DNA from: Klebsormidium nitens
Lineage: Eukaryota > Plantae > Klebsormidiophyceae
Reading direction: 5' to 3'
NCBI GenBank assembly: GCA_000708835.1
Contig: DF237154.1
Coordinates: forward strand, 62,001-126,000
DNA: 64,000 nucleotides
The notes beneath the pieces were generated by a model. That model was not told where the DNA came from and searched no databases. It saw only the letters and a program-made list of their open reading frames with translations. Below, piece by piece: positions 118 through 38,400 of the stretch. The stretch's first letter is position 1. Each line of letters opens with the position of its first letter. The position numbers and the translations under genes are program-made.

Positions 118-3100
118 ATGGGGACTGAACTCAAGAAACTGACAATGCTAGATGGATTGGAGCAGCGAGAAACCGAGCTCCTGGCCGATGTAGCCTGTAG
201 TGAGAGCATTGGTCAGCTCAATCACTTGCTCCAAGAACTTTCCAAGCCGCCTTTGAACGGCGTCCATTTGAACGACTCCGGCAATACAGAGCAGCTTGTG
301 ACCATTGCTGTGCTTGGGCCACCGTTGGAATCGATGCCGATCTGCTTGCAGGGTGCACAGCAGAGCAGGTGATTCCTGGTCTGCTGATATCTTTGAGAAG
401 ACCACTGAAACTGCCTTGTGCCTTCTGCCTTGTGCCTTCTGTAATCAACTGATGATGTACCACCTCCTGCAGCCATCAGTCCACCGATGATGTGTCTCCT
501 GCTCGTGTCCAAAGCCAACTATGTCTATGCTGGTAGGAAGAGCTAAACCTGGATAGGGCTAAGTGGTCTTTCAGCGAGCCTCTACCATCGGCCATTTCAT
601 AGAGGAAGGACCTCAGGGTCTGTAGTCAAACCAAGGGCACCCTTGTTTGAGATGCTGAGGCGTCCGTTTGTGCTCAGTGATACTCAATCAAACCGCAATG
701 ACCGTCCAGGTTAATCTGTAAGGTTAGCAGGCCTGTCCGGGCTCCGCACCAATGCAGTCATGCCATTCACTTAGACAGCAAAAGCACACATCAAATCTAT
801 AGCATCTATCAAGTCTGGTCGGTTGGCGGTGCTAACTTCTCATCAACTGATGCAGAGGCAATATCCTCATGGTACTGGAGCCTTCTTGGCTGGAGAGGCG
901 GCAAGTCAACCACAACGAGGAGGGGAATCCAGTTAACACCCAGCGTCTCTTCATCAGGAGAGCAGTCTCCTTCGATGGGGGTGGTGTTGCCCTTTTAGAG
1001 GACTTTGTGCCACCACGAAAGGTCACCTATTTGGCCAAATTATCACATGTTGACAGAGTAGGTCAGTGGTCGAATGCTCTATCTCAGGTTGGCAGCTTGA
1101 ATCGTCACTAGGCTTCGATTCTCAATGTTTATTGCAACCGCAGAGGCACCATCTCCTCGCTTCCTGCTTGAATCGCTGCAGAAACAGTCCAATCTGATGT
1201 TTCATTACCTCTCTCGTCTCTAAAATGTGCAGAGTCAGACTGATTCGCAAGGACCTAGGATGATGCCACCTGAACAATGAAGAGCTTAAGAGAGATAAAA
1301 CCTGCACTTTGCCCCAGCCTCATGTGCATAATCTTCTTCTCGCAGGTTTGGAAAATGCTTATGCCAGCCTTCTGGCCCCTGGGCTTGAGTGCGCGCTTGG
1401 CCCGTGCCATGCCCTCAATAAGCTCACCTCAAATACGCTACACTGGCATTCCTTGTTAACTCGAGACAGCGAGTTGGCGAATCCCCGGAGCATTACGTTC
1501 GCCACTGCACGATGCGCAGAGGCACAAAAGGTTGCTAGTGAGACGTCTGCCCAGGGCTGCCAGAGTGCTTCTTGCACACTGCCGCTTCTGGAACCCAAAG
1601 TGGATTTGAGCCCTATCAATGTTCAACAGTATGTCAGCCCCACCGCCCTTGAGATACTGCGAGCAATAATCTCAATTCGGGTCAATCTTTGACGTCAGTT
1701 ACTTGGCGCCTCGGTTTTTATGGCCGATTTGGGCTAAGGAAGAGGCCCATATTGCTTGTGGAATCTCACAATTTGACGAATCCTTGCCTCAGGAGTTTAC
1801 ACTGCCTGTCCTGTCCCCGTCCACACCCACAGATGAATGCAACACGTTCGAAACATCACCTGCTGACAATTCTGTACTTTAGGTGCTGTTGCGTGCAAGA
1901 AACCAGTTTGAAACCAGCTTGCGACTGATTTCATCTTGTTTGTAACCACTGAGCTCAAATGAAACGGTTGCTTCCATGGTCGGTTATCCTCTCCAGCGTT
2001 TCGTTCCCAGCTCAAAAGCGTGACCTTCACCCTCGTCAGGTCGCGGCAAATGCGGAACAGTAGTCGCCGTAGATACAGAGCAAGAGGAGGACGCGCGCCT
2101 GATCGACAACATCCAAGCTTTCTGCAAACCGCCGAGCGGTGTGCTGGTGGTCAAGAGCAGCGACGGGGCCTCGAGCAGGTAATCCTGCACCGCTTCTCAC
2201 TCCACCTTTGCAGAGCCCCACCTGCATGTGGGAAAACCCCGGACTCAGCCTATTACGGCTGTTCTTGCCGGATTGCAGGCTCTTCGATCGGCTCTTCGTT
2301 GCCAGACTGCGCTTTCTTCTAGCATCTTGAGTCGCACACGACAGCTCAGCAATGGACAAGCCTGGTCCCGGACGTCCGATTGCAGTCGTGCCTCGTTTTG
2401 GGACTCATCCGACGTCCGCGGCGTTGCCACGCATGTGCTAGGGCTGCTACGTGCCTCCGGAGACGAGGCTTTCGTGGTGGAGGAGTTTGTGTCGAGCATT
2501 CAGCCGGTCATTCCGCAACCTAACCAGGTGGGTCAGAAAAGGGGTTGACCGCACATGGTGGCTCCTTTTGATAGAGAACGTCAGCCGATGTCGAACCCAG
2601 CCCGGCCATGTTCGCAGCATTTCGTCGTGCTTGCAAAGAGTTCGATGGTCGGTTTCGACTCGAATCCCAGTCGGCCAATTAGAGACGCTGCCCGATATGA
2701 ATCGTCGACGCCCCAGTTGGCCGATGAGAGGCGCTACAGCCATACGGAATAGTCCTCAGGCGCTGGCTGTCTCAGTGACAAAGCAGATTGACACTGAAAG
2801 GACTCATGTGCTCTCAGACAAAGCCCAACACGCCTAAAGCTTTGGGGGTGCCCCAGGTGCTGAGAAACTTCACCTTCCACTCGAGACAATCATTGCTCAT
2901 CATTTTTGCCGTCTTGAATCAGCGTTCAGCTCATTGAGAAGGAAGGGGTGCAGTGGGCGAAACGCCGGAAACCGAGAATTCTCCATCCTCGTTACACGAT
3001 ATGTCTGGTGCAGATGCCGACGCCGGACTCCGCCTGGCTGGACGCCGCTTCGCGGGCCGGACTGTCTGAAGCTGTGGCGGCACTCCGAGCGGACCGGTTG

Positions 3101-6100
3101 GACGGCTGCTCTCCGTCGGGCCAGGTTGCGGAGGAGCGGTAGGAGCGACGTAGAGAATGCACGTGGTAAGGGTCAGGCGCGGCTTTGTAATCACGGCTTT
3201 TGTTTTTGTTCCTACCCCTGTAGCAAATGTCAAGACGCAAGAGCCTTGATCCGGCCGTTCTCGTGGCTGGTTGAATCAGAGGGCCGCCGGATCCCAGACA
3301 GGCATAGGTGTCTAAGCTGAGTGAAAAGTTTCCTTCTTGGTATCCCAACGCAACCCCTGCGAACGAAATCGGGGTTGCACCACATGAAGAGCTTAACGGA
3401 GATTCCTTTAGACAGAAAAGCTCCGCCAGAACATTATCGATCGGACCTCAGACTCCCGGTTCGGGGTACTGCTTCTTCCGACCTAGCTGCAACGTTCCTT
3501 GAGAAAGATGCTCAAGGGTTGGAAAAGGGTTCAGAGGAGTCACTTTAAGAAGCCAAAACTCGGCAAAATTGTTCAAGAACTGGCCGCCCGGCAGGGATTT
3601 GGCAGCGGGCACCGCGCGTCCTCGCGGCCGCCTTGTCCGGGGCTGAACGGAGAAAATTCGAGTTGGATTCTAAGCTCTTCACTGGGGGGGCATCGCTCGA
3701 GAAGTGGACTTCTCTTAGAAGACTTTCTAGTGTAACCTGAAAAGTTGCTAGTCAGGCCCGGCTTGTCTCTTCAACTGGTGTTGCACCCGACGCATGCTTA
3801 GCAGTCCGCTCGATCCAAGCTTGGCCCAAGCTATTATGGAAACAAACTGCACTCGGTTGGATCATATGGCCCCCCTCCAGGCTGGCCAGCGTTTGGTCGG
3901 TCAGTGGCACAGCTCCTTCCCCCAAGTCTCCCGTCGTTTTGTTGCTTTTGAAAGGCCGTAGTTTGTCTAGGCCGGCCTGTCCGATGACGTGTCTCGTTTT
4001 CCTAGAGCTCCCCGTCGAGCGGCTCGGCTTCAAAGTGCGCGCGCTGGTGGCACGTGCCCCCTGGGGCGAGCCGGAAATCGTCGCGTTACTCGCCGTGAGC
4101 GGGAGCCTCGCCCGTCCGATCCGGTTCCGAGGCAGCAGCGCCGTCGATCTCGATGCCGTGCTCCAGGCCTGGGGAGCATCCGACGCGGCCAGGGAAGACA
4201 TCCGCACTGCGGTCTCCAGCACTGCCGAGAGACTCGCGCGGGTGAGGCGCTGGTGCTCGCGCGCACGTTCTGAGTTTTGGGCTCACTGCAGTAACTGAGA
4301 AGGTCGGCTGCTCTGCCGAGACTTCGTGTCTCTTCCATGGAGCCTCGGAACCTGCGCCGTCGTTCGGACCGCTGCGCTGTCGTTTGGACGCCTGCAAACT
4401 GTGGTGTGGACCTCTGCCCTGTTGAATTGGACTCTGCACTCTTATTCTGGACCTCCGGACTGTCTCATAGACCTCTGCGCTGTCTTTCCTGCTCGCATCC
4501 TGCGGTCATTCTGACATCGGCCATGCTCCATTGTGCAGTTGATCCTGGACTCCGAGACGTCGCTGAAGGACGTCCAAAAGGGAGGCGCTGGCTGCCAGAC
4601 GGACTTCCTCGGCGTCGACATGCTCGTCGCCCCTGCGGCGGCCGCCCACCAGGCCGTCCGTGTATTTGTTATCAAGGTGCGTGTCCCACTTTCTTCAAGC
4701 TGGTCCCATACTACTTGCAACAGGGGTAGACGACACTGTTTCAAAGGAGTCGAATCCGGACAGCCGCAATACAGCAATAACGGCCATCTAAACACCTCGA
4801 CTCGGAAAGTCGGATCGGAAAGGTCTGACCGACGAACCAGAACGTCAAGAAGTTTCGATTGCGATGTTACGCAGGCGGGTACTGGCGTTTGCGCTCCGTC
4901 AAGATACTTACCAGTTCCACCATACTCAGAAAGAGAGTGACCCAGAATCTGGCTGAGGGGTTTGCCCGGGTTCGCAGTTTGGTAATTGCCGGATGAGGTC
5001 TTCTACCAGTACTCAGCACTTCGTGCGGAGCTCAGCTTAGATTTGAGTGACCCCGTTTGGGAGGAGGGTCGCCGTGATCAGCTGCGAGGTCGAGTTGGTG
5101 GGAAAGTTACATGTATGTATCGCTTTTATGCAGAAAGGATGCTCGTAGGCCGTTTATCAGACTCGGAAGCTCGTGTGGCAATTAGACCGCGCCTGAAAGG
5201 AATAAAACGGGGTGTATTTTTGTGCTTGTCTCTTGTCGCCTGGCCTTGATGAGACCCTAACTCTTGTAATGCGATCCATCTATCAATAACGACTTCACTT
5301 GTGAGATTTAGATCTGCACAAGATGCGAAGCTGGCCGGAGGCGAGACTTTGCTGATTGATACAGCTGCTCTGAATCTCTCTAGATTTTACAGTTCGTCAT
5401 GCTCTTAACAGGTCCTGCCGGACTGGAGATGCTGCCGGAACCTGCTGACACCATCCGTGTCACTCTCCAAGAGCGCCAGTCTTTGGGTTGCCAACATGGT
5501 GTCAAGGTCTCAGGATTGCCTCTTGAGAGGAAAGAGGATTCTCATCTTGGGAGCAGGTAAAATGACCTTCGCACCTCAACACGGCAGACCTTCCCGAAAT
5601 CAGTTGCAAAACGGGTCTCATCGGGTTCCGACCTGCTTCAAGGTCGTTGTTGACGGTGGGGTCTGAGCAGGGAACCGCAGCTTCCCCTTTCAATACCCTC
5701 GTAAAGCTGACGTAGTCGATTGGATGTCTTAGACGAATCTTTGATACGCGCCTTCACATCGTAGTAACTTGGGGTGTTTGCTTGCCTTCCCTCTTCCATC
5801 CGAAATGCAACTTTCATTTGCCTTCTCTCTCTTCTGTCCTTAGATCCGTCTTCTCTCCTACATCCAGAGCGCGTTGTTGTTTGCCTTCTTTCTTACAGTC
5901 GGAAGGCGTTCCTATTTGCCAATTACCTTGTCATAAATTTTTCGTTTCCCCTCCCCCAGGTGGCTACACAAAGCGTTTCATCTGGGAGCACACGCGCAAA
6001 CTAGGTTTGCGGGTCGTCCTCGCCCACGAAGACGCAAGTCACTTTGCGCGCGAGCTGGTGGAGACGTTCATCGTCGTCCCTGGCATGGAGTTCCATTCCC

Positions 6101-9100
6101 CCGAGCTCGACCGGCAGCATGCCGCCAGAATCGTGGAGGCCCTCGAGGTGAGCATCGCGTATGCGCCGGCGCTTCATAAGCCTACGATTGGCTGGACTGC
6201 TTTGTTCCCTGGGAAACAGTCCACTCTCGTTTGTTTCTCTCGTAGGTCCAACGGGTAGTGATAACTAGCGATCCTAGATGGTTGGACGAGACGGTTTGCC
6301 CGTAATTGTGGTGGCAATCCCTTTGCGGTGTCAGCTAGGCTTGATAAGAAGGCAATATTAGTGATTCACACAGAAAGGCGGCGAGCAGCCTTTGCTTCAC
6401 CGCAAGACCAGGGTTCTTTATGGCCCTGGTTGACATGAAAAGAGTGGGTTCCCGGGTTTCGGTTTTCTTAACAAAATCGCGACCGCACAACGGTCGGCTC
6501 CTAAGGTCGCACTGTTATAGGCGACCTCAGGGCTTCGATGCGCTCATGAAGCCGCCGAAGTGGTTAAGATAGTAAAAAGCCGGAAACCCAGATGCCAGTA
6601 CGAGACCAGGGACATCCAGGATCAGCGTCCTCAGTCTCCATGTAGTACAAGGGAACACCTGATCGGGGCGTTTGATTGATGCCAATCTCTGAGAAGTTGC
6701 GAGTCGTGCCCTCTCGTCGTGTAGTGCTTTTCCCCAGGTAGTGATCGTCCAGATTGAGCAGTGTAACGTCCAGATTGGTGCGCCCCCCTGCAGTTGCTGC
6801 ACACGTGCAACCCGCGCCTCGAGTGCTCTTCAGGCGGATCGCAGAAGTTCACGACTGTTGGCCAGAATCGTGTCGCAGCCACCCCATCTTCAATATAACA
6901 ACTCCAGTGTGCAAGACTCAGCCATTGGCAGCCCGATTGCAGTAGGAAACGTTCTCGCACCGGGTCTGGCCACACCGGACAATACTTTTCTCAACGATAG
7001 ATCTGGAGCGTCTATCTTTCAGACTAGACGTTAGCGACACGATTTCCTGCTGTTCCCCAGCGAGTCCAAGCCCCTACACTCCGCCTGTCTTCTGCAGGAA
7101 AGGCGGCTCACAGTCGACGGCTGCTTGACGGTTTGGGAGGAGCACGGGCCTCTGGCCGGCCTGGTCAACAACCTCCTTGGGACACGTGGCAACTCGTACG
7201 AGGCCCAAGCCCTGGCCAAGTCGAAGTTTCGGACGCTGGAAGCCCTGATGCGCGCGACCGGGGAGCGTCCGTACGGACCGCCGACGAGTGCGTTCGCGTC
7301 CAAGGTGCAAGGCTCAAGCTGCTTGCTTCCAAGGGTTCCGTTGGGGCTCCGGTGGTCGGAACGAATGGAGATCCAGCTGGAGTGGCTAAAGAATCAGGAG
7401 CTCAAGAGCCGGTGTGAAATGTCTGCGTCACCGAGTCACCTTTGAACCCCGGGCCGGATTTCTGTGGATCACGTCCGGTCCAGCCCCCAGGTCTACGCCA
7501 TTTGAGGTCACAGGAATGTTTGAAGCCAGCAAAACCATTCAAGACAGCGGGTTGTTGGAGCCAGCTGAGTGTTTCAATGTGGCATAATATTCGAAGCCAG
7601 CGGAGTACGACTGACACTAGCAAAGTAGGACTTTGCCCGCTTCGAACGGCGACCCGGTTCGGCCCTTTGCCTTGCAAGGGCACTCGATGCCAGTGCTTGT
7701 GTCAGAATCGCACTATTTTAGCACACATAGAACCCAACGAGTTGCGCGCTCGCTTCGAGGATTTGCTTGGGTGCCTGCACGCAGTCCTCCCTCTCGACTC
7801 TTGACGCGAGGCAGGTCCATACAATCTGCATAGAGTGTTCCCTATTTTAGGCGGACCGCAGAAGAATGCGATGGCCGAAAACGCAGCGCAACCGTCCGAT
7901 TTCGTGACATAAGGACTCCGGTCTGCAAGGTTTAGTCAGGGAGTCGTCAACTTTGACAGAACTAATTCCGATACTATGGGTCAGACAAACCGTGTCTGAC
8001 CAAGCACAAACGAAAGATCTGGAGCGTTCATTTTTCAACGTCAACATCTGGACGGCAGCGCTGCAATTCTTGGTCGTCCCCCAGCCATTTTCTCGTTTTT
8101 GCGGTCCGCCTGATTTTCACCGTCTGCACGGTTTTTGCTCGGGGCAGATCTACCGGCTACCGGACGAAGCGGCTCTGGTCCGCGCCTGGGAGGACCTGGA
8201 AGGGCGACCCGCGATGCTGAAGCCCGAGCATGGGTCCGCCTCCACCGGGGTGTACCTAGCCAAGACCTTGGAGGAGGCGCGGGCGAAGTACAAGGAGATT
8301 CCCCTTTCATTAACGGGCTCGCCAATAGGTCGAGCCTTTGGGTAAGTGGCGAGAACCTTCCGATGGCCACGTGTGCAAGAATTGCTGCTGACGATTCTAT
8401 GGGAGTCGTGCGGGACGGGCCTTGCATGATGGCTCTACGACGACGATCTCTTACGGGTCGAATAGTGGTAACTCCCTTGTCGATCGCCGTTTGTGGGAAC
8501 CAGTTTTGCAAGTTCTGCTCCCAGTAAACACTATCTAGACTATCCCATATGTGTTTTGATAAGATCCATAATCCTGTTATTGTTAACCCGATCCGTAAAC
8601 CCAACGAAAACGCCCTACACAACCGTACCACCCGAAATCCGAGCAAATCCTACCCGTTCACCGGGTGCACAGGGAGCCTTGGATTCATACATTGGGCCGA
8701 ATCGGAGCAATTCGCTCCGGAAAAAATGGCAAATAAACTGGAGGTATGCCCCAGTTCAAGGCCGGTTCATGCAGAAAAGAAACCGTTACAGAAGAAATGG
8801 CTCCGATTTGTGAGAACCGGTTCCTATCCTTCAGAAAGCAGCCATGAACCGGGGCATCGTTCCGGTTCATCCGCCACTATTCCGGAGCGAGATACTCCGC
8901 TTAGGCCCCGGTCTGGATCCTCTTTGAAACCAACGCGCCCTTTGGTTTCGAACTTCACACGAAAGAGGCTCTAGATGAGTCAAGAAAGGTGCCTGAGTCA
9001 ATCTTGAAGCGGACCAACAGTCGATGCAACAGTGTAATTCCAACCGTGTCAGCCCTTCTGAGCAGCTTTGCGATCCGCTTCTTCCCAGGTACACCGCCAG

Positions 9101-11772
9101 CTGTACAAAACGGCTCTTGGCACTTTGGGACCGATTTCAGTCGTATCTGACACAGTTGCCGCCGTGACCATTCCCTTGCAGAAGCGTCCGCCTCGTTATT
9201 TGCAGGTGTGACCTACTGCTGATGGAGTACATCGAGGGGCCCTCCCATGAGGTTGGCATCATCATGTTCGATGGCCAGCTGGTCGCCGCCCTCTTATACG
9301 ACGTCGGGCCTTGCCGGAAGCCTTACTTCAACGAGACATCCGCAGCCTGCCCGAGCGGATTGCAGGAGTGAGCCTCGGGCTGCCTTCAAGCGTTGAGCCG
9401 CTTTTGTCCACCTGCGTGGTTCGGATGTTGCCGGAAGAAGCACGGAGGTCTTGGAAAATGTGTAGACAAGCCTTCTCACACTGCGCTCACATGGTCGATT
9501 CGCCGGAAGGAAATGTTGCTTTGCTTGAGAAGCTACGGTCCTTGGAAAAGGGCTTTCGTGGGCTTTCGTGTGCGTTTCGCAAACGACCAGAGCTCCCGCG
9601 CGTTTGCAGCCCATGCCCCCCCTCCTCTTACAGCGGTGCTCGGGAGCGACTCCTTGTGCCTGTGAACCGTGTGAGTAGTCTGGATTATACGTTGAGTAGC
9701 GGCTATTTGAGTTACGTCATGCCCGGGGGGGGGGTGGGTTTGGTTTTGGGGTTTAGAGTCGGTACGGATGGAGAGCATGTTAAGTCTGGCTTTAGATTTT
9801 TATTTTGTTTGCGCCCGCGGTACTGATCTAACTCAACATAGACCTAACTCAAGATAAAACTGAGACAAATTTAACCGTGCTCACCGTTCCTCCCCTTCCG
9901 CAGTGGCGTTCAGGAGTCGCTCCGCCAGGCTGCCGCCCGGATTTGTCGGGCTCTCGGCTTGAACCACGGTGTCTTCAGCGTGGAGCTGAAATCCACTCGA
10001 ACGGGGTTGAAGCTGATCGAGGTTAACGGGAGGCAAGGGGGCTATTACATCCAGGTGAGGGCAAGCCACCTTGCTCGCCAAGTGTGGGTGATAACGCTGG
10101 TTCAGAAATTACAAGAGCCAGGAATAATAAGCTCCTAATCAGCACTTCAAACCTAACCCAACAATTCACCTGCTCCACACCCATATTCACCTAACCCCCA
10201 AGCTAAAAATACCCGTCCCAGGCTGGCAGGCTTTTATTTTTGCCCCTTATTATTCTGATTTTGACCTTCATGCGCACGTGGGCGGCGGACTCTGGTTGAG
10301 GGTGCGTGGGCGTTTTCGAGATGGCACCCATCGCCGCGTTTGCCGTCGCTTTCAAAGCAGCGCAACATGCTCGCACGCAGCATGGCTGTGAATGCTGGAC
10401 ATTGTAGCAACATTTCGTTTCGTTGAGATACTGATTTCCCGAGCACCTTTAGCCCACCCTTAAACCTGATAAGGACGTTAACCGCAGTCCTCTTCACTGT
10501 AGTCCCCCCCAATGTAACCCCACCCGTTCCCTCGAGGTTTATCCCGATACAAAACGTCGTTGATGAACCTCGGACTTGCCAAAGTGATTGTTGTTGCCGC
10601 GCTGCGGGTCTTTAGCCCAACTATCCTCGGCTGAAGTCGCTCTGTGCTTTCTGTGCGGGGGCGGGCCAAACGACTCTCGGCTCCGACGAACCACGTGAAT
10701 CATAAGTCTTATGCTCTGGCACGTAGGTTGTGAACGCGATTCTAAATCCCAGACTGCCGCTGCTCGCCCGGCAAAAAGAAGTAAGGTAAAAGGAAGCGCA
10801 TTCGGCCCGTGAATGCGCTTCCAAAGTAAGAATTTTTCCGCACCCGGCAAACCCCTAGCATCGATCTCGAAACAAGATGATTAGATCCTACTCGATTGCA
10901 GGATTGGATGCGGCGCGTCTACGGGGTTGACCTGTTGAAAGCGAACATGCTGACGGCGTTTGGCATCAGGCCGCACATTCACACTCTCCCGCAGCCGCGT
11001 ACACACCTAGTGGGCAGAATGATCTATTCAGGGCTACACGGAGTAAGCCCCGCCATTCCAGCACTCCTTTTTTTCTTCTCCTTCGAATGCCGTTTGAGTG
11101 TGCCTCCAAAAAGTTTGCAGAACAAGGGAAGAAACTCCTCGTACGACCAGTCTTTTCACCGCGCTCACTTGTCCGACCTTCTTTCAAAGAAAGACCAGGG
11201 AAAGACCACAAAACCACAAAACAGCGTCTCTCAATACGCGAAGTCTTATCAATCGTGTTTTTCTGTACCCATTTGAGATTCGCATGCGTGGGGATTTAGA
11301 CAGCCCGTCTTATCGTCTTTGTTAGGCGGTTGACGTTTCAATCGGGGACATTCTGATCGCCAATCGGAACCGGTCACTTCGAGTTGAAAACGGCCGCCTG
11401 ACCCCCGAACCGATATGGGGCCTGCGATCTTGCAAGTCCGTGATCCGAGCTTTGTGCGAAGGCCTCTCCCGCCGCTTTTCACCCCCGCTTGCAACAGTAT
11501 CTGTTGATCTTGTTTGTGCGCAGGCCGCGTTTGGAAATGGCAGCTGCTCTGTAGAGCTATTGACGCGGCTGCATCGAGAAGGTGTTGCCGATCTGTTCCA
11601 ACAAGACCCCGACCTAGTCCCGTCCGAGGAGTTCGAAGAGCCGTTTGCAAACATTGCGGTTCCGGGGGCGACAAGGGCGGCCGCAAAAGCCCACATGGAG
11701 GCGCTCTGGAGGATGCTCGGCTTTGAGGCACTCGACTCAAAACCGTGCCCTTACTATCTATCATTATTCTAA
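118..11772 (+). CDS. CARNS1: Carnosine synthase 1-like (ATPGD1) tandem ATP-grasp ligase, ~16 exons, ~965 aa
   Basis: Phase-consistent GT-AG exons: 118-368, 856-1061, 1346-1537, 2040-2178, 2386-2527, 3014-3138 (least certain), 3971-4241, 4539-4676, 5412-5556, 5960-6147, 7098-7304, 8148-8341, 9206-9367, 9904-10054, 10902-11042, 11524-11772. These total 2901 nt, divisible by 3. The peptides are collinear with vertebrate CARNS1 as I recall it: VTIAVLGPP..QSRGNILMVLEPSWL..RAVSFDGGGVALLEDFVPPRKVTY; TDFLGVDMLV; LLRGKRILILGAGGYTKRFIWE; MLKPEHGSASTGV; LLMEYIEG; FSVELK..LIEVNGRQGGYYIQDWMRRVYGVDLL; EEFEEPFANIA..PYYLSLF*. The start codon (ATG 118) is a best guess, and an upstream exon outside the window is possible. 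Confidence 0.88.
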
Positions 11773-12279
11773 GCCTATGCAATGGATGGTGGAGACGATT
11801 CGTTGCGGAGTCATAAGCACTGTGCTACTCGTGCTCTCTTATTGCCTCGAGAAGCGGAGGCTTCTAAGCTATAGCTGTATGTTCAACGTTGACAATCTTT
11901 GATCTGCATTCGTGGCAATCGATTGACGAGTAGGGTGTTTGCTAAGAAATTGCGTGTCTGAACTGCAGATGAATGCGGATATAGGCTCAGGTGGAAACGG
12001 AACATGAATCCCCTTGAACTTTCGAGACAGCCAATGTATAGTATGAGTCTACTCGCTCCTGAATCAGTTGATGTTGCAGGGGCACGTTGATACTGTAAGG
12101 CATATACTGTCACGCTACGTTCCGGCATGTCGCTGGGTCACTGTGTTGCACGATGATGCAATTACTATACCAAATAATGCATGGCCCCAGATACCCTCCT
12201 CCAGACTATTGTCAGCTGGACAATCGCATCTGTTGTGCCTATTGCATTTATGAGTCAACTAGAACCAACTAGCTAATAA

Positions 12280-12682
12280 GCGCCCTGATGCATCGGCGCT
12301 TCAGGCTGGCATATCAGCACGCGCGTTAAAAATCGATTAATCATGCATGTTAAATGCTCATTAGGTGGATGCAAGACCGGTCGATCGACGGTCTTTTCAA
12401 TGAAAATGGCCTCCCTAACCGGGAGGCCTTTTCGGGGTGAAGACGGGGTTTAAAGTTGTTCGGGGTGTCGGGGTTCCGGTTTAGTTTTTGGTTTGGGCAT
12501 GATGGACTTGCCGAGGTTTGTACACGGTGGATGGGCACGGTATACGCCTACCGGGCGAGTCGGCTAAGGTGGCTTGGAGCTTAGGCCGACCCGCCGGGTA
12601 CAATGAGATCATCGCCCGGGGAACCTTTTAAGTGTTTACGTTTAGGGTGGATAGAATTGGGGTTGGACTTGACGAGTCAACC
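12280..12682. repeat. Cluster of short, near-perfect inverted repeats (hairpins) between the convergent 3' ends of the CARNS1-like and SET genes
   Basis: Read directly: agcgcc(ct)gatg/catcggcgct at 12280-12300; aagacc(g)gtcga/tcgacggtctt at 12373-12395; aaaa(t)ggcctccc-taacc-gggaggcctttt at 12403-12432; gtcggctaag..ctta(g)gccgac at ~12559-12590; ggtt(g)gact-tgacg-agtcaacc at 12661-12682. Confidence 0.6.
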
Positions 12683-13462
12683 CAGTCAAGGCCACGTGGT
12701 AAAAACGGTAAGGGTTTAGCCAATAGGATCGCGAATAAAAAGCCTTACCGCGAAAACGTCATGTCAATAAGGGAGGCAATAATGTCCGAAGTTCATGCAG
12801 CCGTTAAGTTCGGGCCCCTTGACACAACCCGCCTTTTGTCCGGCAGCCGGCTAGATGTGTCAAAATCAAAGTTCGGGAACGCGGCCGCCGACGCCCTCAC
12901 TCAAATATTTTCTGGAAACGTCGCCGACGAAGTTTAGGGCTCGCATTTGCGGTTGGCAGAGCGCAACAAATGCTAACCCCATCGGACGGTTCAAAGGCTT
13001 GAAGTTGAGGGCTGCCCCCATCGATCGACGGTTCAGAATTTTTGTTGAAGGGCCCGTGAGCGTGCGTACTGATTGAGAAATTTGACGTGCACGTAATCAC
13101 CAATCATGTAAGTGGTACAAGTATACTCAAAAGATGATCGAGGGCTCCTTCGATCCGTGCACGAAGATTATGCGCCGCAAGACAGTGACCGCCCTGGGGC
13201 TTGAATCACTCTGCACTACGAGATCTACATTTGGCATCTCGCCCAAAATTGTAAATTTTCATCCGGCTAGGACAATTTTAAGTGTCTTCAAAGCTACGAT
13301 GTCGGTCCCGTTAACGCCACCAAATCTGCATTTCCTTAGTACTTTGAAGCCAAACGCAATGCCGTCCAGTCACCGTAACACTGCCCAACCTTCGTGTCAG
13401 TCTTAACCTAGTCTTAACCTGTTCCTCCCTACTCACATCCAACGAGAGCCCAAATACTCCAC

Positions 13463-15878
13463 CTAGTTGGCGCTCCTGACCCCGTGCTTTATCTGACTCT
13501 CAATCGCGTGAGGGGGCCAATTTGTCCCGTAGAACTCTATCAACTTGGGATTCAGGTGATCCCTCCACGTCACGTGCCCGCGGCAAACCATGGCGCCGCA
13601 GCCGCACTGGGTGTCCTTGAACTCCTTGACGGACGTTTCGGAGATCATGTACTGTCCGTAATCGATGGTGATCTCCTCGTCCGGCTGGATGTCACGGCGC
13701 ACCACCATGTCGAAGGAACCGTTGTGGAAGCTGCAACAGAGAACAAGGTGGTAAGTACTTGTTCTCCGAAAGCTTGACCGAATGGAAGCACCACCTCCTT
13801 AGGTTGTTGGGGTCCGGTTGTAGACATCCGTCGGCCTCTTTAAGTAGGTTGCATCCTCCAGTGCTCTACATGACTCCCTCCTTGACCCCTTCCAAAAGTG
13901 AGCACTGATTCGTGAATAGCATTCTACATTCTCCGCGGTACAGACACGCCGAGTATACAGATTTGTGCGTGCAATCTTTGCCTCGAGTCTATTCAAACTG
14001 CTTGCTCGTCATTGCGTGAGAACTCTCTCAGAATGACATGCGAACAAGGCAACTCGCGAAGCATCAACCCAAAGTTTCATTCGTTAGCAGAACCGACCTT
14101 GTCACCGTTCTTCAGTTTCCTAAGCACAGCCGTAACATGCTGAAAGAACCCAAATTTGCAGACGTCTCAAGGTTCGAGTTTGGCCTGCGCATCAGATTTT
14201 GATTGCTCGAGGTCACTCACAGGACGTTCGGGTCGCAGCTATGGTTGACGAAAGCGCCGAAGTCCTCTGGCTGGCCCTGCTCGTCCAAACGGGGCGACAA
14301 AATCTCGGTCGCGCTGATCTGTAGACCGCAGACACAACACGTGAGCATAGTAAAATTGCCGCGAAAATGTTTAGAGCTTATTGTGGGCTTGTTAATCCAA
14401 ATGGTACGTCTTCGTGCCTTACTTCCATGAACGATCCTGTTTCGCGAACTCTAAATTCGCATCGTGTCGCGGAGCCGGGGAGAAAAGAAAATCCCAACCA
14501 TAACGGCCGAAAACGGTAGGTTTGTGAGCGAGGACCTCAAAGCAATTATCGTAATGGGGAAATTGTCGTCAACGAAGAAAGAGGATGGTGCGTTCTGCGC
14601 AAAATTGGAATTGACCCTGGTCAGAAGCGAAGAAGTCCATATGTACGAAGCAGTCGCTCGTGCAGCATCGCGGTCAAGGTCTGGCTTGCGGAAAATGGTG
14701 CCTCAATCTTCCTTTATCGCTTGAAGAAGCAGACACCCTTGCTTGACAACTTTCAAGAAGCCAAGGCTGGCGACTTCGCATTGCTCTGCCACCACAGAAA
14801 CAAGATACGACGCAGTCTACAAGATGCCCTTCTGTCATGCTTGCATTAGCGCAATTTTCAACGCCTAAATTTGTACGGAAAAGAGATTCACCTCTTGCGC
14901 GTGTCAGAACGGCGCTAGTGCAGGGAACGCCCCCTCAAGGAAGCGACCTCTATTCTGATCGAATCGTCGATTGCGGGAGTCAACACTCTGACTCAAGAAA
15001 ATCCGCCAGAAGGCCCAACGCCAGTGCAACAAACGCCAAAACATAAAAGCCATAAGATAGCGTTGATGTGATTGATTGTATCCACCCACCTGCGCACACC
15101 AATGCAGGAAGAGCATCTGCTTGTCAAGGGGCCACGTGTTGAGCGTAGGGATGTCCACGACTTCCCCCATGCCGTCCGCCATGAACTCCCCGTTGAAGTA
15201 CTTCTCGCCCTGCTTGATCAAGCGCGTCGCAAACAGGCCCTTCCCGCCCTTGTACTGCGGCTTGTCGCGCACCTCCGCGGCCGGGTGGATCCACTGGTAC
15301 CGCGGGTCGCGCTGCTTGTTCTGCGAAAATACGGTGACATCGAGGTTACAATACATAATTTTCTTGTTCAGCTTTTGCCTTCTTTCTCGCGCCAAGTCAC
15401 TTGCTTTGCGCAAGCGGGCAATGGACCAAGCGCGATCACACCTTCTGTACTGCTAGCTGTATCGCATTATAGCGCTTCGAATCCAGAATTTTCCTGTGAC
15501 AAAGAGGTTTGTTTTCAAGCTACTGCAGATTCAGCATGCGTCTTTGACCGGAAAAAGTAGAAGACTGAGGACAAGCGGGGTCCTCGAGAGGGATGAAGAC
15601 AGAGTGTCTCAGCAGAACATGCACCTGTGCCACTCAGGTCAGCATCAGCCCCTGGAATGTGAGCGTAGAGATAAGTCGACAACCGATTGGGACACCCCGC
15701 TCAGCACCCCCCTGAAATGCGTCTCATCTTCACCTCCTCAGTCCGTCAGCTAACAAAATGGAAGGCTTTCTGTGCAGCCGGACTTGGCGGTCGGCGCGCT
15801 GCTTCTCACCTCTTCCCAGTAGGAAGGCAGGCCCATCTTCTTGAGCTGCTCGGCATAATCGTCTGGGATCACCGGCAT
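13463..15878 (-). CDS. Stand-alone SET domain + post-SET methyltransferase, 4 exons
   Basis: Exons 15878-15810, 15449-15090, 14318-14221 and 13730-13463 join in phase. Motifs: GKGLFATRLIKQGE (SAM-binding motif I), FVNHSCDPN, EEITIDY and the post-SET CGCGAMVCRG (CxCx4C). No chromatin-reader domain is visible. The start codon is a best guess. Confidence 0.85.
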
Positions 15879-28382: not shown

Positions 28383-28521
28383 NNNNNNNNNNNNNNNNNN
28401 NNNNNNNNNNNNNNNNNNNNNNNNNNNNNNNNNNNNNNNNNNNNNNNNNNNNNNNNNNNNNNNNNNNNNNNNNNNNNNNNNNNNNNNNNNNNNNNNNNNN
28501 NNNNNNNNNNNNNNNNNNNNN
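28383..28521. other. Assembly gap (run of N)
   Basis: 139 consecutive N in the sequence. Confidence 1.
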
Positions 28522-29461: not shown

Positions 29462-32400
29462 ATGCTCACCCTAGCAGACATTCATAAGGCCAGGATTGTC
29501 GGCGATGGCGAAGAGATTGTCCTTCTTGGACATGTGAGTGGGCCTGTTCACTGCTTACAACTACACAGCTTTTATCCACAAAATCCAGAATTGGTCGAAT
29601 TTTTCGCAGATACTGAATGTAAGTTGGTGATAGTCAAAGCTAAAGCGAAATATTGTGGAAGTGGAGGAACTATTGCCATCCCAGAGGTTCCTGAGCTGTC
29701 AGCCAGAGTTTTTATTGCACCGTAGCTTGTTTGTTTTAAGCTTTCTTGCAGATCCTGTGGCAGCTCCTCCTACTGCGACTCTATCTCGCTTGTGGGTACT
29801 GAAGGCGCAATTGTGGGTCTTAAGCAGATGCTGGGAGACTTGAACAATCCTGAGTCGCACGCAGTACAGGGTTTGAGCTCAATTTGTAGAGGAGGCGCCT
29901 CAAACGCTGATGGAGCTTCTTTATTGATCTTTCCGGACACCCTCAGCAGTTCCAAGCATTGAGCTTCTCATCTGGTTGAATGTTGTGGTTCATATGAGAC
30001 GATATTTTCGCTTTCATTGGGGCAGTAAGTTTATCCTCTTGGCCACTCCGTGTGAGCTCATCTTTCCGGAGTGGATTTCCTTGACATCTCCAGGTCTTCC
30101 ACACGTTCCGCTGTATCCCATTGGCAGAGACATATAACTCCTATTAATATGTGTGCCCTCATTTAAAAAATAATAACGTGACAGTAAAGTACGCAATGCC
30201 AGTCACTTCACTCTGCCCAATTAACGCCTTGTTCCGCCTGGGTGCTTTCTTTCTGGCTTTTGTGTTTCCCTGCAGGAACCTAGGCAACACGGCGTGGAGA
30301 TTCGAAAGAAATTGCAAGAAATGCGACAATTTCACCTTTCATCTGTCTCGCCTTTCCTTCTTGAATCTGATTTTGACAAGCCCCCATTTCACAGGGCTTT
30401 GGCACAGACCAGACCGTGTGGCACAATCTGGAGCCCCTCCTGCTACGGCGTCGCTTCCGAGTCATGCTCTACAACCTGATGGGCCAGGGGACAGGTGTCC
30501 CCACCGGCTTCTCCAGCACATCTCTCGGCCACTCAGCAAACTCGAGGGTTTCGGTGGACAGCAATGGCTCGGACAGCCCCAAAGCGACGGGCAAGAAAGC
30601 CACCGCAATCGAGCGCGCGACCTCGGACGTGGCGAACGAGGAGTTTGAGCGGGAGCTCAAGGCGTTGCAGCTGTCGCAGCACGGTGGGGCCGGCGAGAGC
30701 CGACGGGGGATGTTTGGGAGGAAGATCAACGAGTCGTTCAGCCGGCTGTTCACACGGAGCAAAAAGAAGAGCAAGGCCGGGGAAACGGCGGTGAGCGAGA
30801 AAACGCATGAGGAGGAACCGGTCGAGTTGCACCCGGAGGAGAGCGCCAACGGGGCAGCGTCCAAAGATCCGGAGTTCTCAGGGAGGCGGGATTTCAAGAT
30901 TGAGGATCTTGACAGGGAGGGAGACGAGCGGCCTGAGCGGATAGACGAGGAGGAAACGGAAGGGATCGTGTCGGCCGAGGACTTCAACCATTCTCGGTAC
31001 ACCACACTGGACGCGTTTGCGGAGGACTTGATTAATCTTATGGACGAGATGGGGGTGAAGCAGTGCATCTATGTGGGGCACTCGGTGTCGGGCATGATTG
31101 GGCTGGTGGCGAGTGTCAGGCGGCCGGACCTATTCAAGAAGCTCGTGCTGCTGACGAGCTCCCCGAGGCAAGCCTCCAAGTTGTCCCCTTTGTTTCCATT
31201 ATCAAAACTCACTAACGTGCTGAGCTGAGCTTGTATGGTTCGTCTTATCCTTCCTCTTGCTATCACTTGTCAAGGACCAGCAATGGGCGACTCGCTTTCA
31301 AGGAGTCTCTTGGGCTTGTCTCTGGTGTAGAGTATGAGGTAAGTGACAAAAGAGGTGTCATGCATGCAAGATCTGAGGAGAGGTCTTGGTCTTGGGCAGT
31401 TCGGAACGTCCTTCATTGTTTGATTGTACTGGACTTCTATAATTCTGAGGAGCAAGGTGCAAGACAGTGGATGGTCTTCTTCCCCCTACTCTGAGACTCG
31501 CAGCATGGTTCTTGTTGCGTCTTCTCTTTACTTACTTGTGAAATAGCTTGCAAGTGCTTGTATTCGACTTGATAAAAATCATTGACTCTGCATTGGGTGA
31601 TGGTGCCAGCCCGTGTTGATTGATTGACTTGCTGCTCTTCTGGTTGAGCCACCCGAATCTACTTTTCCAAAGATTGCTTAGCTACTTCCAAGGTACTGAG
31701 GTTGATTTCAAGTGCTTACTGACATACAGATTCGATGAGTGCTTCTTTGATTCATTGAAGTATTGCAGCTGCTGCGAGCTGGCAATCAGAAGACAGCACT
31801 AGTCTAAGGGTCAAAGTAAGGAATGTTATCCCCTTAAGAATCAAAGTCGCTGGCTGCCTTGAAAAGAGCAATTGTCTTGTGTCTTACTCTCTGCTTTACA
31901 CTACAGTCACTGCAGCCGCTGTCTCCAGTGTGCATGAGTGTTGAGAGAGCTCCACAACTCGTTCTCTGTTCCCTGTCAAACCTCCTCTCATAAGCAGTCC
32001 CGCTCGGGAGAAGGTTCGCGTCCCCTTGATCTTGAGGTCCGCGCCCCCATTGTCTTTGCAATTTGTTTGTAACAAAACTTGCTTACGAATCTGGCTGGGG
32101 TCCCTCCTTTCCATGGTTCACGTATGGCTCACGTATGTGCACCTGCGCTGAGAAGTGTCCTTGTACTCTTCCTCCTCACGAGCGGCTACGGTTGTCATCT
32201 CCTTCCTCTTCTTAGCCGCCTCAGCTTCGACCTGTGGGTCCCGCTGTCTGCAGCCGTCGTTTTCCACTGCTTTTGCGTGTCTGTCGTGTCATCTTTGTGG
32301 CCTTGTCATTTGTTGTCCCGGGAGAAACACCCTTCTTCATCGTCCCTTAAAGTATTGCCAATTGTTTCCTTGTAGTGCAAGGGCGTGAGCCAGCTAGCCC

Positions 32401-35402: not shown

Positions 35403-38400
35403 TCACGATGGCATCGAGCGTGGTTTCGGCGGGCAGCCCCCCATCTCGAGATCCGCCATTTCGGAGATCGCTGGTGCCCCCGGTTCGCTTCGTCGTTGCC
35501 GGCTTAGCAGCTTTTCGTCCAGGGAACTCTTCCGCAATTTGCGGACCATGTCCCGGGGGCTGACCCGGCTTCTCGGCGGGCCCGGCGACTGCGAGCGGCG
35601 GGTGCGGGTCGCCTCCTTCTGGAGGAGCGCGGTCGGGGTAAGCAGCGCAACCGGCGACACGAGCGCGGCCGCCTCCGCCTGGTCCAGGCGCGCGCGTGCC
35701 ATTTCTTTGATCATCGAGTGCAGCTTCTCCGCGTTCAGGGGCTTACTGGAGGGGGGTGGAAGCGAACAGCCGTTGGATCTCTTTTCTCGAAGGGACGTTT
35801 GTAAACGAAGCCGTCAGCCTTTCAACCCTGTTCGTAAGTTGTGCAGCTTGCGATTGGATGACAAAACACATCAGATCGGCGCTTCCATCACACAAGATCC
35901 AAGTTGCGTTACATAAAGCGTCCCTTTCATTTGAATTGGAGCCCGGGTTCTCTAACCCCTCGTTTGAGGCCCCTTGTGTGTTGCATTCTTCCGTGGCAGA
36001 GAGGCTCTCTTGTGGCACAGCAGGGTGACGTAAGCCCATCTTGACCTCCTCCGGCTGTGGCTTACCACTCTCGTGGCCATTACATACCGCTGTCTAGAGA
36101 AACCCCTTTTCAACCACAAGTCTTGACAGCTCGGCCCCCTCAATTCCTGACACCCTCGCACCCACCTGATGTAGGCGTCCATCCCCAGCGCGAGGCAGCG
36201 CTCCGCGTCGCCGGACATGGCGTGTGCCGTCATGGCCACGATCGGCGTCGGCCGGCGCTGCAGTCGCAGCTCCCACGCACGGATGGCGGCGGTCGCGGCA
36301 AACCCGTCCATGACCGGCATTTGGACCTGGGGGTTAAGCGAACCGATTAAGCCATTTGTATTTGGGCCAGAAGCAAGAACGAAAAACAAAGTCCAACCGG
36401 AGAAGTAACAGGACGAGTACCTTTCAATGAAAGACTGACGTGATTCACTAATCCCAACCGACCGGGTTCCGAGCAGCACATCTGACGGGGAGAGAAAGCG
36501 AGACTGTGAATGCAGGCCGGATTAGCTACCAGCGAGGAAATCGATCCGACGGCTTACGTCCATGAGAATGAGATCGAACGGCTCCTTTTCGACCATATCG
36601 ACGGCTTCCCGCCCATTTCCCGCCAGCTTCAACGTATGGCCCCACTTCGTAAGTAGCGCGGTCGCCACTTTCTGGTTCACCGCATTGTCTTCGGTGACCA
36701 ACACGTGCAGGCTGCCCCGCAAGGGGGATCCCCGGGGCGCTTTTCGCGCCGGGGGGGTGAGCCCCGTGGAACCGGTTTGCCCGATCGCGGCGTGCACCGC
36801 GCGCAACAAGCTGTCCTCTTTGATGGGCTTCGCGCAGTGGCCCTGCGCGAGCGGCGTTAGAAAGCTTCAAACAGCCAGGACAAAGGAGTCTCGCTTCTGC
36901 TTTCTTTTCCATCAGCAGTTTGCATTCTCTCGACTGTACGCTTGACAGGCTAAGATTGTGCGCGAGCGAAGTGCCCACCTGCACCTGCAGCTCGCGCATC
37001 CTTTCCGCGTGCTCGGCGGCGGACAGCGCTAAGGTCAGCGCCACGACCGCCGTCTTCGCCAACAACACCGGCGCCTTCTCCCTGACGTCAGCAACCATGT
37101 CGAGGCCCCCCATCCCAGGCATGCAGACGTCAGCCAGCACAAGCCGGAAGGCCCTCCCCCCTTTGGCGGCGGAGTGTAACGCTTCTATGCCGGCGGGGCC
37201 GGACGTTACGACCGTGGGTGACATGCCCCAGGATGCGGTCATACCGCCCAAGATGCGACCGCTCGTGACGTTGTCGTCCACGATCAAAACCGGCAGTTTC
37301 TGCGGGGATAGATTTCCTGAATCAGTAATTGACGTACTCAAATCCGCGTTGCAACCACAGCTCTTGTGCTGTCCAAACATATAGGCGGAAGTCTGGTCTA
37401 GCTCTTACATTGGTCATGTGCGGTTTTCTGTGCTCTGGGTCTTCGGGCCAGCAGTCTTCAGAATGTTTCTCCTTCCAATCTGACCCTTTCTGTAGATGGG
37501 AGCGGTTATAGATTTGATAAAGCTTGCAAATTTCGGATCTGACTGAGTACAGCTAGCTGCGTGATCTTCCCATCTCGCACAAAGCCACCGAGATAGGAGG
37601 CTGTTTGCTGTTTCCAGCTCACACCACGGTTTCTCGCACCTTACCTCTCTTCTGAAAGACAAAAGCTAACAGTTACAGAGTGTCCTGGACGCTCAACTTC
37701 GAACTTCGAGTTCAACCTCAAATCTGAAACCTCAGAATTTCGTTGCAGATCGCCGACTCGATCCTCTCGGAAGGATTTTTTCAGACCTCCCACCTCAGCG
37801 TTCTAAGATTCAACAAAAAAGAGTCAATCACTGCAGGTATGAAGCCGACCGACATTCAGCGACTTCTGCGCGCGCGCGCACCTGGAGCGCCTCGAGCATT
37901 GCCGCGGATCGCTTAGCTGGCGGCGTATCGCTGAGCTGGAAGACGGCGGTGAACAGAAAGTTGCTGCCCTGCCCCTCGTGCGATTCCACCCACATGGACC
38001 CCGCCATTGAGGCGGCCAGCTTGGCGCTGATAACTAGACCGAGCCCGGTTCCGCCGTACACGCGGGTGGTGGACGAGTCCACCTGGGAGAACGGACGGAA
38101 CAGCAGCGACTGCTTCTCCAGCGGAATGCCAATGCCTGGACGGAAAGAAAAGGGGCGCGTTCAAACATAAATCAAGTCACAGAGAATAGGTAAGATCTGG
38201 ATGAGCGGAAGCCCTCGAGGGCTTGGGGCGCCTGTACACATTGAGCCGTTTCAACTTACGCCGTGTAGTTTGAAATGCTCTAGCAGATGTCGTAAGAAGC
38301 CTTTCCAGCCTGTTGTTGAACATGAAACAAACCCACAGTGCGACAAGCTCTTCGGGAAGAGTTCTCTTTGAGACCGTACAAAGTGATCAACTTTATCTTG

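Follow-up and report, generated by a model that had tools for sequence, protein, structure and literature searches.

The gene of Klebsormidium nitens at positions 118-11772 on the plus strand of the window (the whole 64,000-nt stretch of DNA that was analysed) is probably a vertically inherited, fast-evolving CARNS1/ATPGD1 gene with a degenerate N-terminal domain, whose assembled mRNAs are out of frame and whose product, if made, would have only its C-terminal domain in workable form. The locus itself is a real nuclear gene that belongs to the CARNS1/ATPGD1 family (KEGG K14755); it is expressed, integrated and rich in introns.

Identification of the K. nitens gene

The multi-exon gene is collinear with CARNS1 proteins from the N- to the C-terminus. 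Matches of a profile made from five animal CARNS1-like proteins follow the exon order strictly, from profile position 49 to 934, and tblastn searches with four of these five proteins were also collinear along the locus. The place and the motifs given in the earlier note were all found on the plus strand: MGTELKK at 118, AVSFDG at 962, TDFLGVD at 4599, LILGAG/GGYTKRF at 5541/5959, LIEVNGRQGG at 10013 and YYLSLF with the stop codon at 11752-11772. Its estimate of about 16 exons agrees with the public model on scaffold DF237154.1, which has 16; the proposed length of about 965 aa was not reproduced, as the public product has 975 aa and an ancestral-like assembly 935 aa. That the gene is a genuinely integrated part of a streptophyte alga was supported; it is intron-rich, its introns are spliced out in RNA contigs, and it lies on a 143.8-kb K. 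nitens scaffold (NIES-2285 assembly). The suggestion of an undescribed system did not hold: NCBI and UniRef already list the protein as "carnosine synthase [Klebsormidium nitens]", and two-domain relatives occur in other algae and protists. A carnosine synthase homologue in an alga is thus already on public record and opens no new system.

Phylogeny and origin

Full-length two-domain relatives were found in Chlorokybus, the euglenids Euglena and Petalomonas, Hemistasia (diplonemid), Clydonella (amoebozoan) and Elusimicrobia. In line with the earlier note, no land-plant protein was among the best 120 of 181 family matches. The trees joined the K. nitens gene with L001, an intron-rich metagenomic sequence from an uncultured organism (100/99), and this pair with Chlorokybus (100/99). 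The resulting streptophyte subclade lies outside Metazoa, and the animals form a clade of their own. All of these fall into a eukaryotic two-domain clade (100/100) that includes the clade of the characterised animal enzymes, and in both trees the two-domain proteins of Elusimicrobia branch next to the eukaryotic family as its sister. The gene is a member of the eukaryotic CARNS1 family; a specifically "animal-type" nature was not supported.

The grouping with Chlorokybus and L001 outside the animals, together with at least 10 introns common to the K. nitens gene and L001 in position and phase, supports vertical inheritance, with no transfer from animals. Of the two origins proposed earlier, ancient retention is favoured by these trees and introns, and horizontal transfer from animals is contradicted by the trees and by the gene structure. 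That an animal CARNS1 was transferred to the alga, or that animal DNA contaminated the assembly, is extremely improbable and already contradicted. The first named database matches were mollusc and fish proteins, but this pattern reflects sampling: once algae and protists are included, the gene joins Chlorokybus and L001, with the animals apart. The gene has 15-16 exons versus 6 in a scallop, and no more than one or two intron sites of the two genes lie close to each other; both its scaffold and its expression in runs from four studies argue against contamination.

The result fits the rejection of horizontal transfer for human CARNS1 by Salzberg 2017 (PMC5422933). CARNS1 is an old eukaryotic family that was retained patchily, in streptophyte algae, euglenozoans, an amoebozoan and animals; its sister group is Elusimicrobia. 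This pattern settles the question of an animal-type or horizontally transferred gene in K. nitens.

Domain architecture and catalytic residues

The K. nitens DNA has the CARNS1/ATPGD1 layout, in which about 480 aa form an N-terminal ATP-grasp-like domain and about 450 aa a C-terminal ATP-grasp. The two ATP-grasp domains of the earlier note were borne out by a match of the C-domain to Pfam ATP-grasp_4 (E 2.8e-9) and, for the N-domain, by a confident model of a relative (not of the K. nitens copy) that matches the folds of D-Ala:D-Ala ligase, RimK and TTL. The C-domain keeps the ATP-binding Lys K702, the Mg-binding E835 and N837 and the catalytic Arg R839 (P0001 numbering). These residues are invariant in alignment A1; in A3 the Lys is invariant and the other three nearly so. 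A model of the C-domain (pLDDT 88) matched 3VMM (BacD) and 3VOT (BL00235) in Foldseek (E ~1e-22, TM 0.72-0.78), and phmmer detected 3VOT with E 1.6e-7; Pfam LAL_C2 was not detected in P0001, the K. nitens protein. Judged by its predicted model and its sequence, the C-terminal domain is an ATP-grasp of L-amino-acid-ligase type with a three-subdomain fold.

Divergence of the K. nitens copy

The branch of the K. nitens gene (0.75-1.14) is 3.6-7 times longer than that of its sister L001 (0.16-0.21). Between K. nitens and L001 the identity is 35% for the N-domain and 54% for the C-domain, versus 61% and 59% between L001 and Chlorokybus. Family-conserved positions are kept at 15 of 22 sites in the N-domain and 50 of 58 in the C-domain; in the same check, 13 other family members mostly kept 90-100%. 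P169A, K183T, T186W and R187H replace N-domain residues that at least 85% of relatives share. The N-domain has lost its E-x-N motif (IKV|LPDW versus IEV|NDHD in relatives), together with about 25-30 residues around it. Eight conserved C-domain positions are changed; the changes at family-conserved sites include EHDVD to SHEVG, DNGPT to DVGPC and FNVE to FSVE. By these sequence comparisons the copy is fast-evolving and unusually divergent, and its N-domain is degenerate.

Transcripts and reading frames

RNA evidence came from Logan contigs, which drop rare variants, of four public runs from four studies (X1, X5, X8 and X11). The gene is expressed in every run examined. GT..AG junctions in the contigs were 368|856, 1061|1346, 1537|2040, 2178|2442, 2527|3014, 3165|4006, 4241|4539, 4676|5412 and 5556|5960, and the alternative 1628|2040 was found in runs X1 and X11 only; donor 1537 was the sole exon-3 donor in X5 and X8. 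A loose contig end at 6148 matches the start of the exon at 7098 in all four runs. For the six junctions downstream of 7304 the basis is homology, GT-AG sites and introns that match those of a relative. Contigs with intron retention were also present. The exons and related features are listed in Table 1.

Table 1. Exons and alternative segments of the K. nitens CARNS1-family gene (positions in the window)
Feature	Position	Strand	Evidence and remarks
Exon 1	118..368	+	ATG at 118, in-frame stop upstream; 368|856 in 4 runs; profile 49-104
Exon 2 (RGNILMVLEPSWLE...AVSFDGG...FVPPRKVTYL)	856..1061	+	368|856, 1061|1346 in 4 runs; profile 104-162, E 5e-13
Exon 3, main donor 1537	1346..1537	+	1537|2040 in 4 runs; donor places exon 4 in ancestral frame
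Exon 3, alternative 91-nt extension, donor 1628	1538..1628	+	Used by 975-aa model; X1/X11 only; log-odds -0.6, without coding signature
Exon 4 (ancestral frame 2: ...GVLVVKSSDGASS, Lys strand of N-terminal ATP-grasp)	2040..2178	+	Frame 2 aligns with relatives
144-nt insert relative to L001 (exons 4 and 5 are one exon there)	2179..2322	+	In-frame TAA at 2180
Exon 5, ancestral-frame long form (GQAWSRTSDC...FWDSSDVRGV...EEFVSSIQPVI)	2323..2531	+	Profile 274-324; tblastn E 0.001
Exon 5, observed short form	2442..2527	+	2178|2442, 2527|3014 in 4 runs; begins inside ancestral exon, shifts frame
Exon 6, observed, without counterpart in relatives	3014..3165	+	2527|3014, 3165|4006 in 4 runs
Exon 7 (RLGFKVRALVARAPWGEPEI...)	4006..4241	+	Joints seen in RNA; profile 337-411
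Exon 8 (..GGAGCQTDFLGVDMLV..VFVIKV)	4539..4676	+	Joints seen in RNA; N-domain E-x-N lost
Exon 9, linker to C-domain (WVANMVSRSQDCLLRGKRILILGAG)	5412..5556	+	Joints seen in RNA; profile 479-510
Exon 10, C-terminal ATP-grasp start (GYTKRFIWE...)	5960..6147	+	5556|5960 seen; loose end 6148 = exon 11 start
Exon 11	7098..7304	+	Profile 565-636, E 1e-16; intron position and phase same in L001
Exon 12 (PAMLKPEHGSASTGV, ATP-binding Lys strand)	8148..8341	+	Public model, profile, alignment, L001 introns
Exon 13 (LLMEYIEGPSHEVG...DVGPCRKPYFNETSAACPSGLQ)	9206..9367	+	Holds six of the eight conserved C-domain site changes
Exon 14 (..GVFSVELK..LIEVNGRQGGYYIQ)	9904..10054	+	Mg-binding E-x-N and Arg motif; profile, alignment
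Exon 15	10902..11042	+	Profile; isoform translation; L001 introns
Exon 16	11524..11772	+	Stop TAA at 11770-11772; profile; public model

The joint between exons 4 and 5 breaks the ancestral frame: 2178|2442 was the sole exon 4-5 junction in the contigs. On translation, the main splice form, in which donor 1537 is combined with 2178|2442, stops at codon 290. Donor 1628, the minor form, opens the 975-aa frame, which reads exons 4-6 out of frame. For about 156 residues of this annotated protein, the frames or segments read have no match in any relative. The public model calls for caution when it is used to express the enzyme or to reconstruct metabolism. That the 975-aa frame is open across three out-of-frame exons is somewhat unlikely by chance.

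Codon usage favours the ancestral frames. The log-odds for exon 4 are +11.6 in frame 2 versus -12.0 in frame 1, the frame of the public model, and those for exon 5 are +9.6 in the ancestral versus -5.7 in the annotated frame; exon 6 has a coding signature in no frame and matched no profile positions (gap from 324 to 337). Read in the ancestral frames, exons 4 and 5 keep a coding signature and contain no stops; these frames are either still in use or were lost recently. An intact 935-aa ancestral-frame ORF can be assembled from the DNA with canonical GT-AG sites through junctions 2178|2323 and 2531|4006, and a polypyrimidine tract followed by AG forms a candidate acceptor before 2323. This assembly aligned with the relative P0007 across residues 15-932 (453 bits), versus 406 bits and an alignment from residue 375 onward for the public model. 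Neither junction was seen in the contigs of the four runs, and contig depth was 0 in the bin 2200-2399 in runs X1 and X5. No mRNA encoding both domains in the ancestral frame was present among these contigs, in which rare isoforms can be missed. Since Logan contigs drop rare variants, a low level of the 935-aa mRNA may exist. The gene is full-length, as claimed before, at the DNA level, but not in the transcripts seen.

Functional interpretation

In the reading that we consider probable, an insert with a stop codon lies within the ancestral exon 4/5, and splicing removes it from all assembled mRNAs in a way that breaks the frame. As a result, the major mRNA ends at codon 290, and only the minor mRNA from donor 1628 keeps the 975-aa frame. 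If this protein is made, only its C-terminal domain could presumably work. It would act as an ATP-dependent amide ligase: a small amino acid, with its carboxylate activated as an acyl-phosphate, would be joined to an amine acceptor, and ADP and phosphate would be released. Beta-alanine and histidine may no longer be the substrates. The degenerate N-domain, the eight conserved-site substitutions in the C-domain and the frame-breaking splicing make the production of imidazole dipeptides by this copy less likely.

An intact carnosine synthase of about 935-965 aa, with both domains functional and making carnosine, homocarnosine or related dipeptides, is unlikely. Such an enzyme would fit the canonical splice sites and better alignment of the 935-aa form, the codon usage and the intact catalytic motifs of the C-domain, but the contigs of the four runs lack both junctions that it needs (2178|2323 and 2531|4006), the four N-domain replacements and the loss of E-x-N speak against it, and so do the eight changed C-domain positions. 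Rather unlikely, too, is a transcribed decaying duplicate (a unitary or processed-by-splicing pseudogene) without functional protein, whose annotated frame would be an artefact, chosen because it is the one path that stays open. The stop at codon 290 from the main donor, the intron retention, the long branch and the loss of conserved residues in both domains agree with decay. Against it, nine C-domain exons have open frames with a strong coding signature and keep 86% of the family-conserved sites, every run examined shows expression, and two runs contain the open 975-aa path. It is also improbable that the gene is a neofunctionalised duplicate, in which re-wired splicing would discard the N-terminal ATP-grasp and the C-terminal ligase with its eight substitutions would make a non-carnosine amide, or that the alga uses regulated splicing to switch between a 935-aa form with intact N-domain and a scrambled 975-aa form.

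Comparison with known enzymes

With the animal carnosine synthase CARNS1/ATPGD1 (Drozak et al. 2010, J Biol Chem 285:9346, cited in PMC3660329) the K. nitens gene shares the two-domain layout, collinearity over the whole length, 36-41% identity in the C-domain and the ATP-grasp motifs GxGG..K, KPxxG, MEYxxG and E-x-N-x-R-x-GG; as in vertebrate CARNS1, its N-domain E-x-N motif has Lys for Glu. It differs from the animal genes in its position in the trees and its exon number, in the conserved residues lost from the N-domain and changed in the C-domain, and in the broken ancestral frame of the observed mRNAs.

Family and architecture are common to the proteins of Chlorokybus atmophyticus (Chrsp10S00051), Euglena, Petalomonas, Hemistasia and Clydonella, with Chlorokybus and L001 being closest. 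These algal and protist relatives mostly keep the N-domain motifs VVVKPSGPxW, PINGxNT and IEVNDHDC, whereas the K. nitens copy does not have this set intact. A carnosine-synthase-like gene of the green alga Monoraphidium braunii (Fakhri et al. 2024, Algal Res 78:103387, cited in PMC12916786) is grouped here by the title of that article.

The C-domain model resembles bacterial L-amino acid ligases (BacD/YwfE 3VMM, BL00235 3VOT, RizA 4WD3; TM 0.62-0.78), and by analogy both groups would use ATP-grasp dipeptide-forming chemistry. The bacterial ligases differ in being single-domain proteins of about 400-470 aa with 15-18% identity and no N-terminal ATP-grasp-like domain. The Elusimicrobia proteins P0086, P0088, P0096 and P0097 are 32-35% identical to the algal-type P0007 over 84-97% of its residues 340-946, but are bacterial, longer (963-1615 aa) and carry LAL_C2 (PF18603).

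Gene identity and public record

The gene at 118-11772 (+ strand) is real and is a member of the CARNS1 family; all motifs quoted for it in the earlier note are present there, in order. Comparison of a 63-residue exon (5959-6147) with 1.84 billion representative proteins retrieved a public K. nitens protein of 975 aa (P0001), which is identical across the exon and whose translation corresponds to a 16-exon path through the window. CARNS1-like protein queries from molluscs and fish, and unnamed ones, gave tblastn matches collinear with the gene. A profile derived from five such proteins (three from molluscs, one from a fish and one an unnamed transcript) matched its exons in order from profile positions 49 to 934. 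P0001 is named 'carnosine synthase [Klebsormidium nitens]' in NCBI and UniRef, and the gene lies at 62118-73772 of scaffold DF237154.1 (143,752 bp; assembly GCA_000708835.1), so organism and protein name are already public. With the protein annotated and the family known outside animals, the gene is not the undescribed candidate it was taken for. What the analysis adds is evidence for degeneration or re-purposing of the K. nitens copy, and for a public protein model that is read out of frame in part.

A literature search revealed no paper linking Klebsormidium or streptophytes with carnosine synthase. One paper reports carnosine in a diatom under high light and cites Fakhri et al. (PMC12916786), and a metabolic-reconstruction paper mentions that carnosine has been proposed to act as an antioxidant in red algae (PMC10629481).

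Transcription and splicing

Up to 46% of sampled words from 5400-11800 were present in RNA runs. Logan contigs from four runs, which come from four studies and bear two organism labels, were aligned to 200-6199 and showed zero differences from the genome over this interval. The earlier note had proposed RNA mapping to confirm the junctions: those within 200-6199 were observed in contigs, whereas the six junctions downstream were placed from canonical splice sites, from homology and from a relative whose introns occupy identical positions. The loose contig end after 6147 matches the sequence with which the exon at 7098 begins.

The exon 1 RNA contig continues beyond position 200 for about 500 nt on the upstream side, so the start of the 5' UTR, or of an upstream exon, lies outside the window. 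Genome-collinear RNA contigs at 3136-4034, covering intron 6, were found in each of the four runs; their depth was roughly 10-15% that of exon 7, reflecting either intron retention or another transcript.

Features of the gene and of the rest of the window. Splice junctions (all GT..AG) are written as last/first exon nucleotides.
Feature	Position	Strand	Basis
Junction	368/856	+	RNA contigs
Junction	1061/1346	+	RNA contigs
Junction	1537/2040	+	RNA contigs
Junction	1628/2040	+	RNA contigs of runs X1 and X11 only
Junction	2178/2442	+	RNA contigs
Junction	2527/3014	+	RNA contigs
Junction	3165/4006	+	RNA contigs
Junction	4241/4539	+	RNA contigs
Junction	4676/5412	+	RNA contigs
Junction	5556/5960	+	RNA contigs
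ORF, 156 aa	3752-4222	-	
Assembly gap	28383-28521		139 N
Long ORF	30416-31228	+	Pfam Abhydrolase_1, E 7e-11
Long ORF	36526-37380	-	Pfam Response_reg, E 1.5e-8

A reading-frame break in exons 4 to 6

The public model P0001 uses the minor donor 1628 and translates exons 4 (2040-2178), 5 (2442-2527) and 6 (3014-3165) into Arg/Trp/Cys-rich sequence without homology. The frame that aligns with relatives, here called ancestral, is a different one. Homology of exon 4 lies in frame 2 (..GVLVVKSSDGASS), with predicted tryptic peptides such as LIDNIQAFCKPPSGVLVVK, and that of exon 5 in frame 2 of 2323-2531 (GQAW..FWDSSDVRGV..EEFVSSIQPVI). With the gene's remaining exons as training set, codon-usage log-odds were +11.6 in the ancestral versus -12.0 in the annotated frame for exon 4, and +9.6 versus -5.7 for exon 5; no frame of exon 6, or of the 91-nt stretch that extends exon 3, showed a coding signal.

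Translation from the major donor 1537 through the observed junctions ends at a stop at codon 290, and donor 1628 yields the 975-aa public protein. A hypothetical 15-exon path (1537/2040, 2178/2323, 2531/4006) gives an intact protein of 935 aa in the ancestral frame throughout. This protein aligned with the transcript-derived relative P0007 over residues 15-932 (453 bits); the alignment of P0001 with P0007 starts only at residue 375 (406 bits). The junctions 2178/2323 and 2531/4006, which the 935-aa path needs, occurred in no contig of the four RNA runs; contig depth over 2200-2399 was zero in two runs and derived from intron-retaining contigs in the other two. The ancestral-frame isoform was thus unobserved; since Logan contigs drop rare variants, it may still occur at a low level. 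Rescue of the frame by keeping exon 6 was rejected (stop at codon 374), as was rescue by alternative donors inside exon 6, none of which was in phase when the sequence was checked by hand.

In L001, a metagenomic intron-rich relative, the counterparts of exons 4 and 5 form a single exon. At this spot K. nitens carries a 144-nt insert (2179-2322) with an in-frame TAA, and relatives have nothing equivalent to exon 6. The simplest reading is an insertion into the ancestral exon, followed by splicing around the insert at frame-breaking sites.

Family distribution and origin

An initial homologue search limited to the C-terminal half detected three molluscs only, a search from a six-protein alignment returned nothing beyond the query's own protein, and a metagenome search for loci related to P0001 gave no close relative. 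A search with P0007 revealed 181 family members. By source name, these comprise animal CARNS1 from vertebrates, molluscs and a brittle star, full-length two-domain proteins from Chlorokybus atmophyticus, Euglena longa, Euglena gracilis, Petalomonas, Hemistasia and Clydonella, single-domain versions (about 600 aa) from dinoflagellates, and proteins of 963-1615 aa from Elusimicrobia. None of the 120 members listed, out of the 181, is a land-plant protein. P0086, P0088, P0096 and P0097 are two-domain bacterial proteins from Elusimicrobia metagenome-assembled genomes. In the public model of the Chlorokybus protein (P0019, Chrsp10S00051, 1422 aa), about 480 aa are added at the N-terminus and the C-domain E-x-N segment is missing, probably through a gene-model error.

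L001, a 119-kb JGI contig (metagenome 3300060284), was reached from a metagenome fragment of 61 aa; its intron-rich family gene (3031-14053) is a slowly evolving orthologue from an uncultured eukaryote with all N-domain motifs intact. A 2.1-kb SRA contig (L005, Logan SRR14092359) is 95-97% identical to this gene, with one intron removed.

In a quick tree of 63 full-length rows and a careful tree of 43 C-domain rows, K. nitens grouped with L001 (support 99 and 100/99, respectively) and this pair was joined by Chlorokybus (99 and 100/99), while animals formed their own clade (100 and 93/98). The eukaryotic family was monophyletic (100/100), with Elusimicrobia as sister group in both trees. At least 10 introns share position and phase between K. 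nitens and L001; in contrast, the scallop gene has five introns only, at most one or two of them near an algal site. The tree placement and the introns shared with L001 therefore show that the gene originated by vertical descent in streptophyte algae and not by transfer from animals. As for horizontal transfer, the other origin considered in the earlier note, an animal source is contradicted by the separate animal clade and the different scallop introns. A re-analysis of human CARNS1 by Salzberg agrees with vertical descent (PMC5422933).

Domain folds

Single-exon translations gave weak ATP-grasp hints against PDB and Pfam, and generic ATP-grasp clusters in an Atlas search. The C-terminal part of P0001 matched Pfam ATP-grasp_4 (E 2.8e-9). 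No CARNS1 structure has been solved; the closest sequences with a structure belong to the bacterial L-amino acid ligases BL00235 and BacD. The AlphaFold-predicted K. nitens C-domain (pLDDT 88, pTM 0.89) resembled BacD and BL00235 with TM 0.72-0.78.

The N-terminal half matched no Pfam family above threshold, an N-domain profile had no match among PDB sequences, and profile-profile comparison of N- and C-domain alignments detected no similarity (probability 0.5%). Assignment of the N-domain to ATP-grasp therefore rests on faint Pfam hits and the predicted fold: the N-domain of a relative (P0007:1-490), modelled with confidence (pLDDT 82.6), resembles D-Ala:D-Ala ligases, DcsG, RimK and tubulin-tyrosine ligase (E about 1e-8). 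By this modelled fold, the description as a two-ATP-grasp protein holds for the family. Judged from sequence, both ATP-grasp sites may have been active in the ancestral enzyme.

Divergence of the K. nitens copy

The terminal branch of K. nitens measured 0.75-1.14 versus 0.16-0.21 for L001 in the two trees. N-domain identity is 35% between K. nitens and L001 and 61% between L001 and Chlorokybus; for the C-domain the values are 54% and 59%, respectively. At sites conserved across the other eukaryotic members (at least 85% of 42), K. nitens keeps the residue in 15 of 22 N-domain and 50 of 58 C-domain cases, where most others keep 90-100%. Losses in the N-domain include CPMSSS to CALGPC, DKLHTR to NTLHWH and PINGDNT to PIRFRGS, as well as the E-x-N motif (IEV/NDHD to IKV/LPDW). 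The changes in the C-domain are clustered (EHDVD to SHEVG, DNGPT to DVGPC, FNVE to FSVE), and its Lys, E-x-N and Arg motifs are kept. This evidence points to an aberrant copy, degenerate or re-purposed. Its product, if any, may be carnosine or another amide.

In an alignment (A2) including P0007, the further transcript-derived relatives P0018 and P0020, and P0019, most non-vertebrate N-domains keep VVVKPSGPxW, PINGDNT and IEVNDHDC. The Glu of the N-domain motif is replaced by Lys in the vertebrates checked and in the K. nitens copy.
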